Positions 25,890-56,372 of a DNA stretch of 64,000 bases are shown in pieces (position 1 is the first letter of the stretch; each line of letters opens with the position of its first letter). The notes under the pieces were generated by a model, which made no database searches, was not told the origin of the DNA, and saw only the letters and a program-made list of their open reading frames with translations. The DNA is taken from assembly GCA_002269645.1 (NCBI GenBank), contig NIVC01001325.1, positions 124,001-188,000 of the forward strand, written 5' to 3'. A program made the translations under genes and the position numbers. Source of the stretch: Macrostomum lignano. Lineage: Eukaryota.

Positions 25890-26585
25890 ACCATCATCAT
25901 CGTCAATCATCATCATCATCATGATCAATCATGATCAATCATGATCAATCATGATCAATCATCATCATCATCACCATCATCATCATCATAATCAATCATC
26001 AACAATCATCACCATCATCATCGTCAATAATAATAATAATAATCATCATCATCATCAATCACCATCAATCATCACCATCATCATCGTCAATAATAATAAT
26101 AATCATCATCATCAATCATCATCATCATCATCATCATCGTCAATCATCATCAATCATCATTATCATCACCAATCTTCATTATCATCATCAATCATCAATC
26201 ATCATCATCGTCAATCATCATCAATCATCATAATCAATCATAAATAAACATCATCAATCATCATAATCAATCATAAATAAACATCATCAATCATCATAAT
26301 CAATCATAAATAAACATCATCAATCATCATCATCGTCAATCATCATCAATCATCATCACCAATCATCATTCTAATCATCAATCATCATCATCAATCATCA
26401 TTCTAATCATCAATCATCATCATCAATCATCATTCTAATCATCAATCATCATCATCAATCATCATTCTAATCATCAATCATCATCATCAATCATCATTCT
26501 AATCATCAATCATCATCATCAATCATCATTCTAATCATCAATCATCATCATCAATCATCATTCTAATCATCAATCATCATCATCA
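25890..26585. repeat. (CAT/AAT/TCAA)-based microsatellite continuous with the poly-Asp tail of F-box paralogue 1
   Basis: The ATC-type array begins inside the last GAT codons of the ORF ending at 26570. Confidence 0.9.
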
Positions 26586-29500
26586 TCATCCAAATCGTGG
26601 TCGTTGTCCTCGGAGCTGCTGTTGCTGTCCGCATCGGACGAGCCGAAGCCGTTAATGTCCTCGAGCATCTGCCGTTCGTAGAACTCGTCGCTGTCCATGC
26701 TGAGATTCTCTTCTTCCTCATCGAACTCGTCCTCGTCATCATCGCTAAGCCAGGGCGGCATGTGCTCATAGTCGAACATGAATAGATTGCCTGCCTCGGA
26801 TTCGTCGCTGTCGTGTTCCTCCTCCGCCGACGAGTCACGGTCGTCGTTATCACCGACAGAGGCAGCGGCGGGGCTGGCAGTTTCGACAACTTCAACTCCG
26901 AAGCCTAGGCGAAGCCGAGCAAGACGCTCTGACAGCGCCAGAGATGCATCCGCATCCCCATCGCCTCCCCCAGCCTCGGCTTCTTCGTCCTCCTCCGAGT
27001 CACTGCCTCTGCTGCCGCCACCGCCGCTGCCGCTGATCCGCAGGCGGAGTTTCGGGAACCGGTCGAAGCCGTCCGACAGAGCGGTTCGCCTGGCCAGAGC
27101 GGTAGCCAGCTGGCCGGGCCTGGCCAAACCCGGACACCTGGTCAGGTCTAGGCTGACGAGACGCCGACAGTTGGCCAGCAGGGGCGCCAGGCCGCCGGGG
27201 CCGAGCATCGGGCAGCGGGCTGCCAGCAGCTCCTGCGGTGGTGGTTGAGCGGGCAAACAATGAAGCGTGCGCTCGGAGATCAAGCAGAACTATTATGCAT
27301 TTGAGTAGGGGCTCAAGTATTGCGAAATCACACTAATGGAAATCACACTAATAGAAATCACACTAATGAAAATCACACGAATGGAAATCACACGAATGGA
27401 AATCACACGAATGGAAATCACACTAATGAAAATCACACTAATGAAAATCACACTAATGGAAATCACACGAATGGAAATCACACGAATGGAAATCACAATA
27501 ATGGAAATCACAATAATGGAAATCACAATAATGGAAATCACACTAATGGAAATCACACGAATGGAAATCACACGAATGGAAATCACACAAACGGAAATCA
27601 CACAAATGGAAACCACACTAATGGAAGTCACACTAATGGAAATCACACGAATGGAAATCACACAAACGGAAATCACACGAATGGAAATCACAATAATGGA
27701 AATCACACTAATAGAAATCACACTAATGGAAATCACACTAATGGAAATCACACGAATGGAAATCACACGAAGGGAAATCACACGAATGGAAATCACACTA
27801 ATAGAAATCACACTAATGGAAATCACACTAATGGAAATCACACGAAGGGAAATCACACGAAAGGAAATCACACTAATAGAAATCACACTAATGAAAATCA
27901 CACTAATGGAAATCACACGAATGGAAATCACACGAATGGAAATCACACTAATGAAAATCACACTAATGAAAATCACACTAATGGAAATCACACGAATGGA
28001 AATCACACGAATGGAAATCACAATAATGGAAATCACAATAATGGAAATAACAATAATGGAAATCACAATAATGGAAATCACACTAATGGAAATCACACGA
28101 ATGGAAATCACACGAATGGAAATCACACAAACGGAAATCACACAAATGGAAACCACACTAATGGAAGTCACACTAATGGAAATCACACGAATGGAAATCA
28201 CACAAACGGAAATCACACGAATGGAAATCACAATAATGGAAATCACACTAATAGAAATCACACTAATGGAAATCACACTAATGGAAATCACACGAATGGA
28301 AATCACACGAAGGGAAATCACACGAATGGAAATCACACTAATAGAAATCACACTAATGGAAATCACACTAATGGAAATCACACGAATGGAAATCACACTA
28401 ATGGAAATCACACGAATGGAAATCACACAAATGGAAATCACACGAATGGAAATCACACAAATGGAAATCAGGACACGGGAAATCAGCACACGAACCAAAC
28501 TATTAAAACTGATTCCTAAGCTCATTGCTCACCTGCAGCTCTGGCGGCGGCGGCTGTCGTCCGTCAAAGGCGGTGCCGGACGCGTCTAGGAAGCTCAGGC
28601 GGCAGAGGCCCTTCAGCGAGGCGAAGTCTTCGTTAGCGAGGCCGGCGCAGTCCGGCAGGTCGAGTCGGCGAAGCTGCGGCAGGCGGGTGACGAGGCAGCG
28701 AAGGCAGCCGCCGGTCAGGTCAGCCCTGCCGAGATGGAGCGCCCGGAGGCTGCAGCCGTTCAGCTGCCAGGAGGCTTCGGCGGCTGCGGCGCTGCCTTCT
28801 CGGATCATCGGCCAGCGAGTCCAGTCCTCGAAGAGTGCGACATCCTTCGACTGAGGGGGGAGGCGAACGGGTTTCTTGGGTAGTGGGGTATTGATACTGG
28901 GGTATTGGTATTGGGGCATTGATATTAGGGTATTAGGGTATTGGGGTATTAGCCTTGATACTGGGGTATTGATATTTGGGCACTGGGGTATTGATACTGG
29001 GGTATTGATATTTGGGCACTGGGGTATTGATACTGGGGTATTGATATTGGGGTATTGGGGTATTATTACGTTTTAGCATTTGAGTATTGGGGGCATGGAT
29101 ATTTGGGGTATTGTGTATTGATAGGGAGTGTTACCCGCTCGATGCGCAGCTCCTCCAGCTTCTCCAGCTTCTCCCATCCGACTCGGTCGCCGAGCCGCTC
29201 CAACCGCCTCGCCAGCGTCAGCCGAAGCGACACCAGGCCGGAGCCGCAGGCCTCAGCTGCGGCCGTCACGACAGTCTCGTTCGCCACGTTGGTCAGCGTC
29301 AGCTGGCGAAGTCGGCAGTCGGCGATGAAGCAGAAGGCCTCGGCTTTGCGCAGCTGCTGGGCTGGCAGGCTGAGCTGCTCCAGGTGACGGCCGCAGCCAC
29401 GCATGAGCAGCCAGAGGGCCTGGGGGCGGGTAAAGTGAACTTTTGCACAGCACTAACACGATAACAGGATGTCTGTAGCTAACAGGATGTCTGTAGATAA

Positions 29501-55300: not shown

Positions 55301-56372
55301 AGAGTGGAAGGGATGCCTGTTCCAGAGTGGAAGGGATACCTGTGCCAGAGTGGAAGGGATGCCTGTACAAGAGAAGGTGTTTTGTTAGCAAAACTTACTG
55401 ATCGGGCTTCAGACTTCGGATGACATGCGTCAGCGTGCCAGTGACCAGAGAACCTCTAGGCCGGCTATCCTGGGCACTGGTAGATACAGTCTCCTCAGCG
55501 AGCCTGGCGCCCCATCTCATAGACAAACGTGACACCAGACGAGATAACAGTGCAGCGGGGCTGTTTCTTGAAACAGCAGTCTCAGGCGCAATAGAGGCCT
55601 CAGCCTCAGCCAGCGCGGGCGCAGCTCTGGCAGCGAAGTCAGCCAGGCCAGAATCAGCATCGGGCCCATCGTTCCAGTCAAGAAATTCGAGGCCGAATTG
55701 CACCAATAGGAAACGGGCAGGGCCCCCGGCATTCCTATGAACAGACAGAATTTGAATTGCAGAGACCAGGTGACGAGCTTCGAACACCAAAACAACATTA
55801 GCCTGCTTGGCGAGGCGCCAGACGATATCGGAAAAGACGCAGAGAACTTCTGGCTGCGCGTTCGCCTGTTGGAAAAAGAAGTCGATTAAGGCTGGCTGCT
55901 GATCTTTTAGGCGAATATACAGCGTTGGGGAGGTCCGTGGAAGATTAAGCGCAAGGCGAACAAGCGCCTGGGCGAAGGCGCCGTCATTGACAGACAGTTC
56001 GCATACGGCAAAGAGCTGGCAGCAGAAGTCGGACCAGCCATCTTGGCTATTCGAGGTGGTCAGCAGGTGAAAACCTGGCAGCAGTGTCAACGGTCTGACC
56101 CGATTAATGACAGTGCGGAATGGATACCTGGGCTGGTGGTAGCGCACAGAATAAAAGACTTGGCCCTGTGGCAGCACCAGGCGTGTCTGAAAACCAAATA
56201 AGTTTCTCGAAAATTCGCTAGGTTGAACTGAAGCGCGAAAAGCGTCACAGGTGACAGTGAGCTCCAGCTCTAGGTTTCTGTAATAATCATGCACATTCCC
56301 AATGCTTGAACTCCTCGAGGTGGCAGTTAGGCCAGAGAAGGGCAAGTAGAACTTTTGCACCTGGGAATCAGC
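40390..56372 (-). CDS. Large F-box/leucine-rich-repeat protein, paralogue 2 (about 1388 aa plus an externally supplied start, 9 exons)
   Basis: Exons 56372-55399, 50011-49272, 47740-47572, 46787-46509, 45384-45294, 45120-44407, 44218-43934, 43738-43412, 40977-40390; intron positions and phases identical to paralogue 1; total 4167 nt in frame. First exon starts at acceptor AATTGCAG|GCT, with an in-frame stop upstream and no ATG. AATAAA on the minus strand near 40060. Confidence 0.8.
41410..42760. repeat. 37-bp minisatellite GTGGCTTCAACCTCCTTATCTCTCCGATCCCCTTCTC (last intron of paralogue 2)
   Basis: Visible in the sequence. Confidence 0.95.
42761..43211. mobile_element. Foldback MITE with perfect terminal inverted repeats and 8-bp TSD (hAT-type)
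   Basis: CAAGGACGACTTAAGTAGAAGGACGGGAAACCTCGTTT ... AAACGAGGTTTCCCGTCCTTCTACTTAAGTCGTCCTTG, flanked by GGCTTTAC (42753-42760) and GGCTTCAC (43212-43219). Confidence 0.85.
45615..46380. repeat. (GACA)n microsatellite (intron)
   Basis: Visible in the sequence. Confidence 0.97.
47220..47415 (-). mobile_element. tRNA-derived CORE-type SINE (second copy)
   Basis: Minus strand GGTTCGATTCCC box B, then TGTGTCCTTAAGCAAGACACTTAAC and CACCCAGCTGTAAAATGGGTGCC. Confidence 0.75.
47915..49045. repeat. 23-bp GGGATGCCTGTTCCAGAGTGGAA minisatellite (intron 2 of paralogue 2)
   Basis: Visible in the sequence. Confidence 0.95.
50240..55370. repeat. 22/23-bp GGGATGCCTGT(T/G)CCAGAGTG(G)AA minisatellite, about 5.1 kb (intron 1 of paralogue 2)
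   Basis: Visible in the sequence. The ORF track shows an internal 1259-bp higher-order duplication. Confidence 0.97.

Follow-up and report, generated by a model that had tools for sequence, protein, structure and literature searches.

The 64,000-nucleotide stretch of Macrostomum lignano DNA analysed here (hereafter the window; contig NIVC01001325.1 of assembly Mlig_3_7, positions 124,001 to 188,000) carries two neighbouring genes, both on the minus strand and of nine exons each, which we rebuilt from the sequence and which would encode large proteins with a long N-terminal region, an F-box-like motif and leucine-rich repeats (LRRs). Coordinates are those of the window, and features lie on the minus strand unless otherwise stated. 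Comparison of the two window halves by BLASTN yielded ten colinear blocks, and the exon boundaries were read directly on the minus strand. All eight introns are bounded by GT..AG in both copies, and the intron phases, 2,1,2,2,0,0,0,0, are identical in copy 1 and copy 2. Paralogue 1 (type 1, 26570..35204) is a genuine open reading frame (ORF) assembled from splice sites: its exons 1 to 5 (35204-34198, 33477-32738, 32437-32251, 31601-31326 and 30973-30892) and 6 to 9 (30490-29720, 29419-29135, 28850-28533 and 27232-26570) encode 1442 amino acids and end in a TGA stop codon at 26572-26570. Paralogue 2 (type 2, 40390..56372) comprises exons 1 to 5 (56372-55399, 50011-49272, 47746-47572, 46787-46509 and 45384-45294) and 6 to 9 (45177-44407, 44218-43934, 43738-43412 and 40977-40390) and encodes 1409 amino acids plus an initiator methionine for which there is no genomic ATG. 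A candidate poly(A) signal, AATAAA, lies 325 nt past its stop codon (40059..40064). An earlier reading of this DNA made from the letters alone (the sequence-only reading) had proposed two clean nine-exon ORFs of about 1400 residues with the same intron phases, and the reconstruction bears this out.

The same reading had also predicted a small hidden exon in each gene, and exon 5 was found at exactly the positions it gave. This exon measures 82 nt in paralogue 1 (30892..30973), where it is also present in the UniProt fragment A0A1I8I7D1, and 91 nt in paralogue 2 (45294..45384), where it is also present in the GenBank products PAA69427.1 and PAA63239.1. Both lengths are of the form 3n+1, so that the frame is kept in each gene, and conservation between the copies is limited to the 3' end of the exon (CVLLID). 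In paralogue 1 exon 5 is needed to bridge the phase 2 end of exon 4 and the phase 0 start of exon 6. In the case of exon 3 of copy 2 we followed the GenBank model and adopted the acceptor 6 nt upstream (47746), because it gives the better alignment with copy 1 (ELVDAR versus DLPNAR).

The GenBank annotation of Mlig_3_7 was derived from a genome-guided RNA-seq assembly (StringTie/TACO) in which coding sequences (CDSs) were called by TransDecoder and gene ends were trimmed at mapped trans-splice and poly(A) sites (PMC5730564). The best protein match in our searches is the 'hypothetical protein BOX15_Mlig017547g1, partial [Macrostomum lignano]'. PAA69427.1 (BOX15_Mlig009803g1, on this contig) reproduces exons 1 to 6 of copy 2 letter for letter, exon 5 included, and starts with ADSQ, directly after the AG. 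Both PAA69427.1 and PAA63239.1, which are RNA-seq-based, span exons 1 to 7 with the hidden exon, which places the N-terminal region and the start of the F-box/LRR half on one transcript, as the sequence-only reading had it. The junctions of exons 4-5-6-7-8 of copy 1 are reproduced by A0A1I8I7D1, and those of exons 3 to 9 of copy 2 by further UniProt fragments. UniProt names such fragments automatically as 'F-box domain-containing protein' and, in one case, as 'F-box and leucine rich repeat protein 12'. Literature searches returned no papers on the gene ids Mlig009803 or Mlig017547. We conclude that the gene structure is real and that the locus holds two expressed, tandemly duplicated M. lignano genes, which are already known in that they are present in GenBank as hypothetical proteins.

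Across the genome examined (764 Mb in 5269 contigs), exon 1 and exon 2 have six matches each, which correspond to the tandem pair on each of three contigs: that of the window and two others, referred to here as C1861 and C359. All nine exons and all splice sites were found in each of the six copies, and the ORF is fully open over more than 1400 codons in four of them, including an intact orthologous copy of paralogue 1 on C359. The two C1861 copies have one frameshift each: type 1 lacks one nucleotide in exon 6 and type 2 lacks two in exon 9, the latter copy also having in-frame deletions of 9 nt and 3 nt; these deletions could be PacBio indel errors or signs that a redundant locus is decaying. 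Within each type, sequence identity among the three loci is 98-100%. The DV1 assembly is known to be redundant (PMC5730564), and the near-identity of the three loci fits such redundancy. The family thus consists of two genes, with two paralogues per locus, and is not an expansion.

How translation of the two mRNAs would begin is suggested by the start of exon 1. Copy 2 reads AAATTGCAG|GCT GAT TCC, without any ATG, and its GCT (Ala) codon is adjoined by the trans-splice acceptor TTGCAG (56373..56378). Copy 1 reads CAATTGCATG GCT CAG CAG, and its TTGCATG (35202..35208) holds the only genomic ATG among the six copies. At the other two loci the type 1 copies read TTTCCAG|GCT and TTTTCAG|GCT, and all three type 2 copies read TTGCAG|GCT, so that in five of the six copies a trans-splice acceptor stands directly before an in-frame ORF that has no ATG of its own. 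The acceptors of these five copies match the motif [T/C]TNCAG described for trans-splicing in M. lignano, whose 35-nt spliced leader (SL) ends in ...TTGCATG (PMC8629364), and each is followed by |GCT in frame. That flatworm mRNAs can be initiated at the AUG of the SL is established (see Cheng et al. 2006, as cited in PMC9851317). Since the acceptor is present and the SL ends in ATG, addition of the SL would give AUG-GCU in frame. In both mRNAs the AUG is therefore most likely donated by the 3' end of the SL, joined at the AG that precedes the Ala2 codon, and the GenBank CDS would be 5'-partial and start at Ala2 because its start codon is supplied in this way.

The TTGCATG of copy 1 in the window equals the final 7 nt of the SL. 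Compared with the C1861 allele, the ATG shows three substitutions in a run of four bases, and the changed bases spell the last six of the SL; over 70 nt upstream and 1005 nt after this point the two alleles do not differ. Over the next 1 kb the sister alleles are 99-100% identical to copy 1. It should be noted that Mlig_3_7 was polished by Pilon with RNA-seq reads besides genomic reads (PMC5730564). The window ATG was probably produced when SL-bearing RNA reads overwrote the acceptor during polishing. If so, copy 1 would be expressed and trans-spliced at this position, which is indirect evidence for its expression, and the AUG of all six gene copies would be supplied by the SL. Should such write-in of SL sequence be widespread, the calls of start codons and acceptors across Mlig_3_7 would be affected.

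The first ~850 residues of the proteins found no counterpart. Residues 1 to 850 match no Pfam family at expectation values (E) of up to 10, a two-paralogue profile of residues 1 to 853 has no match in the PDB, and a word-indexed search of 5.8 billion proteins returned M. lignano entries only. The Pfam scans covered the full protein, exons 1 and 2, UniProt fragments and the stretch that precedes the F-box, and yielded no hits besides the weak ones to F-box and LRR families. An exhaustive phmmer search with the 1103-residue GenBank product against 1.84 billion representatives returned only M. lignano fragments and one Miscanthus protein (E 6.6e-6), an internally repetitive protein that we rejected as a spurious match. 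The sequence-only reading, which had called the first ~830 residues unassignable, was therefore right for a slightly longer region. UniProt attaches the names 'RPAP1_C' and 'GCP_C_terminal' to N-terminal fragments. These names could not be reproduced: two such fragments gave no hit to any Pfam family, even with E allowed up to 10, and the presence of two different names on near-identical fragments suggests spurious automatic naming. A P-loop/NLR reading was rejected, and so was a CXXC/KDM2 reading, the region having three isolated CxxC pairs only and no cysteine clusters. Neither self-comparison nor Pfam revealed internal repeats in the N-terminus, TPRs included.

Structure prediction offers an outline of this region. 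AlphaFold2, run on exon 1 with both paralogues, gave a predicted local distance difference test score (pLDDT) of 53.5 and a predicted template modelling score (pTM) of 0.51, with seven strands within residues 5 to 102 followed by helices; the corresponding exon of paralogue 1 (34200..35201) would thus open with a beta-sandwich-like domain at about residues 5 to 102. A Foldseek search of the PDB with the exon 1 model returned nothing below E 0.06, the hits being generic small beta-sandwiches and helical repeats only. The model of the 1103-residue GenBank product alone (pLDDT 39.9) was unusable. A low-confidence full-length model shows mainly helices from about residue 130 to 716, with a few short strands among them, and places a small beta segment at about 744 to 816, before the F-box-like motif.

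This motif occupies residues 860 to 899 of paralogue 1 (LPPGAFQDGVLDRLAPSDWLRLSRSCVCFRRLVSWRPRLG; 30086..30205), as a sub-threshold match to the Pfam F-box family PF00646, and residues 850 to 889 of paralogue 2 (44773..44892), with an identical protein sequence; its start lies 10 to 20 residues beyond the position of about 840 first proposed. It is followed by the LRR region, at residues 900 to 1281 in paralogue 1 (exons 6 to 9, 27056..30085) and 890 to 1274 in paralogue 2 (40801..44772). In a manual layout of paralogue 1, about 13 LxxLxL units with a period of 24-27 residues, three of them with inserts, run from residue 900. The LRR halves match Pfam LRR families below threshold, among them LRR_FBXL18 and a plant F-box-associated LRR family, and these matches are consistent in kind. 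In a sequence search of the PDB with the full protein, the top match, and the only one, is FBXL2 (6o60_C, E 9.8e-4), on the last repeats. The arrangement that defines FBXL proteins is thus present, as the LRRs follow directly on the F-box-like motif and the last units are of the cysteine-containing type and align to the LRRs of FBXL2. In the phmmer search with the 1103-residue product against the 1.84 billion representatives, no orthology to a named animal FBXL (FBXL1-22) was seen, and hence no full-length match to a conserved FBXL orthologue, the outcome that the sequence-only reading had named as counting against itself. We consider it plausible that the C-terminal half consists of a divergent F-box and about 13 LRR units. 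The protein of paralogue 1 ends in an acidic low-complexity tail (26573..27055). Its stop codon and poly-Asp end lie inside an ATC/GAT-type microsatellite (26005-26590); the end of the tail is therefore repeat-derived and probably variable in length.

Taken together, these features make it reasonably probable that the genes encode a divergent FBXL-type protein with a lineage-restricted N-terminal module, which would act as a substrate receptor of an SCF (SKP1-CUL1-F-box) ubiquitin ligase. In such a protein, an N-terminal region of ~850 residues restricted to the lineage would comprise a beta-rich domain of ~100 residues, ~600 mostly helical residues and a small beta segment, and would be followed by the divergent F-box, the ~13 LRR units, of which the last ones are of the cysteine-containing FBXL type, and the acidic disordered tail. 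The F-box would dock on SKP1 within the SCF complex, and the LRR solenoid with the tail, possibly together with the N-terminal module, would hold a substrate or a regulator. SKP1 docking and the ubiquitin-ligase function are inferred from the sequence. If docking proved true, these proteins would represent an F-box/LRR receptor with an unusually large, lineage-unique N-terminal module, and the transgenesis and RNA interference (RNAi) available in M. lignano make the question of SKP1 docking directly testable.

Several observations weigh against this reading. The score of PF00646 is 10.1 bits in the full protein, where the F-box appears in the Pfam scan at E 0.82 only, and 16.1 bits (E 0.011) in an isolated 64-residue segment, both below the gathering cut-off of 20.5 bits. 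Single-sequence AlphaFold2 shows two helices at residues 866 to 885 with pLDDT below 50, and no model is good enough for the three-helix F-box fold (pLDDT ~30-40 there). The evidence for the SL start is indirect, consisting of the acceptor sequences, the boundary of the GenBank CDS at this junction and the SL-like bases of copy 1 in an assembly polished with RNA reads. The GenBank models extend no further than exon 7, in which they have paralogue-1 residues, and terminate in a 'PGS' that could not be located, so that the link from exon 7 to exons 8 and 9 comes from frame conservation and older gene predictions.

The first of these observations also feeds the alternative that the F-box-like stretch is degenerate and does not bind SKP1, the protein being an LRR/helical scaffold outside SCF ligases. 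The sub-threshold PF00646 match agrees with such a view, as do the lack of any significant homologue with a validated F-box and the departures from the Pfam consensus, namely an extra residue in helix 1 and no usual Trp in helix 3. However, the F-box is the sole Pfam family that matches the segment, it is placed just where FBXL proteins carry their F-box before the LRRs, these LRRs are closest to those of FBXL2, and the segment is 100% conserved between the paralogues. We therefore regard a scaffold outside SCF ligases as unlikely, though serious enough to be kept in mind, and retain the divergent FBXL-type receptor as the preferred interpretation.

The divergence between copy 1 and copy 2 varies from exon to exon. 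In exon 1 the nucleotide identity is 62%, with a synonymous divergence (dS) of 1.07 and a ratio of nonsynonymous to synonymous divergence (dN/dS) of 0.38. Exons 9 (65%, dS 0.74, dN/dS 0.55), 5 (67%, dS 0.66, dN/dS 0.58) and 3 (75%, dS 0.62, dN/dS 0.36) come next. The earlier claim that the most N-terminal exon diverges most is correct, but these three come close to it. The identity is 86% in exon 8 (dS 0.24, dN/dS 0.53), 94% in exon 4 (dS 0.12, dN/dS 0.37), 95% in exon 6 (dS 0.08, dN/dS 0.59), 96.5% in exon 7 (dS 0.09, dN/dS 0.19) and 99% in exon 2 (dS 0.026, dN/dS 0.22). Across all exons, dN/dS between the paralogues is thus 0.19-0.59, and between the duplicated loci it is 0.19-0.21; exon-wise dN/dS shows no sign of diversifying selection at the resolution of two sequences.

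The synonymous sites share the mosaic pattern of the protein sites. Exon 1 has therefore diverged because the pair arose long ago, its synonymous sites being saturated, whereas exons 2, 4, 6 and 7 are near-identical because they have been homogenised. Gene conversion keeps the core of the genes, made of exons 2, 4, 6, 7 and part of 8, near-identical. This converted core comprises most of the helical region, the putative F-box and the first LRRs. Exons 1 and 9, at the ends, and exons 3 and 5, as linkers, have drifted apart while purifying selection acted on them. Between the paralogues on C359, identity is 99.6% in exon 2 and 98.9% in exon 7, whereas the same exons are less alike across loci (98.2-98.5% and 95.8-98.2%, respectively). 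Gene conversion is ongoing, because these exons of the C359 paralogues are closer to each other than to their cross-locus counterparts. Alignable sequence between the paralogues stops 3-19 nt outside the exons, and the intron interiors cannot be aligned. The locus is a clean case of exon-confined gene conversion that mimics a 'fast-evolving' terminal exon.

The introns themselves are rich in repeats. Most introns of both genes (26005-56372) hold a minisatellite or microsatellite array of their own, with periods of 4, 15, 18, 22-24 and 37 bp. Intron 1 is the sole intron with a repeat family common to both copies, of 22/23-bp units, of which 26 are found in intron 1 of copy 1, about 225 (5.1 kb) in intron 1 of copy 2 and 49 in intron 2 of copy 2.

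A shared, converted core with diverged ends might provide two specificities on a common scaffold, which is speculation. One may go further and suppose that an N-terminal fold restricted to Macrostomum senses a ligand or substrate, the converted docking core being shared and the diverged ends picking the targets; we hold this extension to be rather improbable.

Still less can be said for the proposal of the sequence-only reading that a variable sensor module was fused to a ligase adaptor in a fast-evolving family engaged in host-pathogen conflict. Such a family would agree with an exon 1 that is only 53% identical between the paralogues at the amino acid level and with an N-terminal region whose only relatives in the libraries searched come from M. 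lignano itself. However, the synonymous divergence of exon 1 matches that of its protein sequence (dS 1.07 versus 0.026 in exon 2) and does not point to accelerated protein change, and its dN/dS of 0.38 is reached with saturated dS. Moreover, no exon reaches a dN/dS of 0.6 between the paralogues, the value between loci is about 0.2, each locus holds just two paralogues, the C-terminal exon has diverged to the same degree, and the near-identity elsewhere is due to gene conversion. A conflict-driven family is therefore very improbable, and a divergent FBXL-type receptor whose core is homogenised by conversion remains the interpretation that we favour.

The idea that each gene gives two products, EEM-TGA (31322 in copy 1, 46505 in copy 2) being a stop that closes an N-terminal protein of ~736 residues and the F-box/LRR part a separate transcript, can appeal to the overlap of this TGA with the donor GTGAG, as retention of intron 4 would end the ORF there, and to older UniProt models that start inside exons 3 or 4, yet it is very improbable, since the RNA-seq-based GenBank CDSs cross exons 4-5-6, the frame is maintained through exon 5 of both paralogues although its length differs, and there is no ATG or acceptor context for a start at exon 5 or 6. 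As the RNA-seq-derived models join exons 1 to 7 of the second gene, EEM-TGA is a splice donor (AT|GTGAG) and not a stop. The separate transcripts that the sequence-only reading had named as fatal to the fusion are thus contradicted for exons 1 to 7.

The distance between the two genes bears on how they may be transcribed. From the AATAAA of copy 2 (40064) to the acceptor of copy 1 (35204) the spacer measures 4.9 kb, of which ~4.05 kb are tandem arrays (35275-38349 and 39032-40009). SL-resolved operons of M. lignano have been delimited by a distance of <1 kb (PMC8629364), and the repeat-adjusted distance between the paralogues, ~0.8 kb, lies within this limit. Up to and including exon 6 the GenBank CDSs correspond to paralogue 2, and they then continue with paralogue-1 residues (exon 7: 29135-29419 versus 43934-44218), and the sole downstream AG|CCNGGNTCN site is found at 14825 on the minus strand. 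The cross-paralogue join of exons 6 and 7 is either read-through splicing or a multi-mapping artefact. A possible operon arrangement may be related to the paralogue-1 residues of exon 7 and the 'PGS' end of the GenBank models; multi-mapping of reads on exons that are 96-98% identical explains these oddities equally well.

Other features of the window lie on both sides of the pair. Downstream and on the same strand, the neighbouring gene has an exon for a dCMP/cytidine deaminase zinc-binding domain (22468-23052; PF00383, E 8.7e-27). Exons at 3970-4455 and 8188-8547, also on the minus strand, encode a Sushi/CCP repeat (E 5e-7) and a weak F5/8-type-C (galactose-binding-like) match, and probably belong to one gene for a multi-domain extracellular protein. 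On the plus strand, a Pro/Thr/Ser-rich repetitive frame (PSTTPQPPNHP...; 5687-6849), open in three frames, is either a mucin-like exon or a mere tandem repeat. Upstream of paralogue 2, two inverted copies of one open frame of ~70 amino acids (...PLLRCLLADIISV.FNCNLIQMKAADLSSMMWSRKSLFEGARVNRPVLCT; 56404-56619 on the plus strand and 56873-57205 on the minus strand) are probably a transposable-element remnant in an AT-rich flank.

The two genes can finally be compared with known systems. In flatworm mRNAs initiated from the SL, the acceptor AG is followed by codon 2 in frame, and this is what five of the six copies display; they differ in that one copy has a genome-encoded ATG, probably an assembly artefact. 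As to the protein, FBXL-type proteins such as SKP2, FBXL2 and FBXL3 likewise have an F-box-like motif followed by LRRs, last units of the 'LDLxxC' type and a C-terminal tail after the LRRs. By contrast, their F-box is near the N-terminus, whereas it starts at residue 850-860 in the M. lignano proteins, in which the Pfam scores of both F-box and LRRs are sub-threshold. The fungal proteins of the Dia2/Pof3 type (TPR - F-box - LRR) and FBXL12 share the succession of a helical region, an F-box and LRRs. They differ from the M. lignano proteins, in which neither Pfam nor self-comparison detected TPRs or any other repeat; the name FBXL12 given to one fragment is automatic.

In KDM2A and KDM2B (FBXL11 and FBXL10), too, a large N-terminal region comes first, the F-box lies near residue 890 or further on, and LRRs make up the C-terminal part; the late F-box of the M. 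lignano proteins resembles theirs. They carry JmjC, CXXC and PHD domains, whereas none of these was found in the M. lignano proteins (Pfam on residues 1 to 850, E up to 10; no cysteine clusters). In FBXL5, an N-terminal hemerythrin domain that senses iron precedes the F-box and the LRRs. The M. lignano proteins show no hemerythrin match and their N-terminal region is five times longer; the likeness lies in a regulatory or sensor domain placed N-terminal to an F-box/LRR part, a sensor role in M. lignano being conjecture. The late position of the F-box, which the sequence-only reading took to be unusual, thus has a precedent in KDM2A/KDM2B, and a sensor domain N-terminal to the F-box has one in FBXL5.

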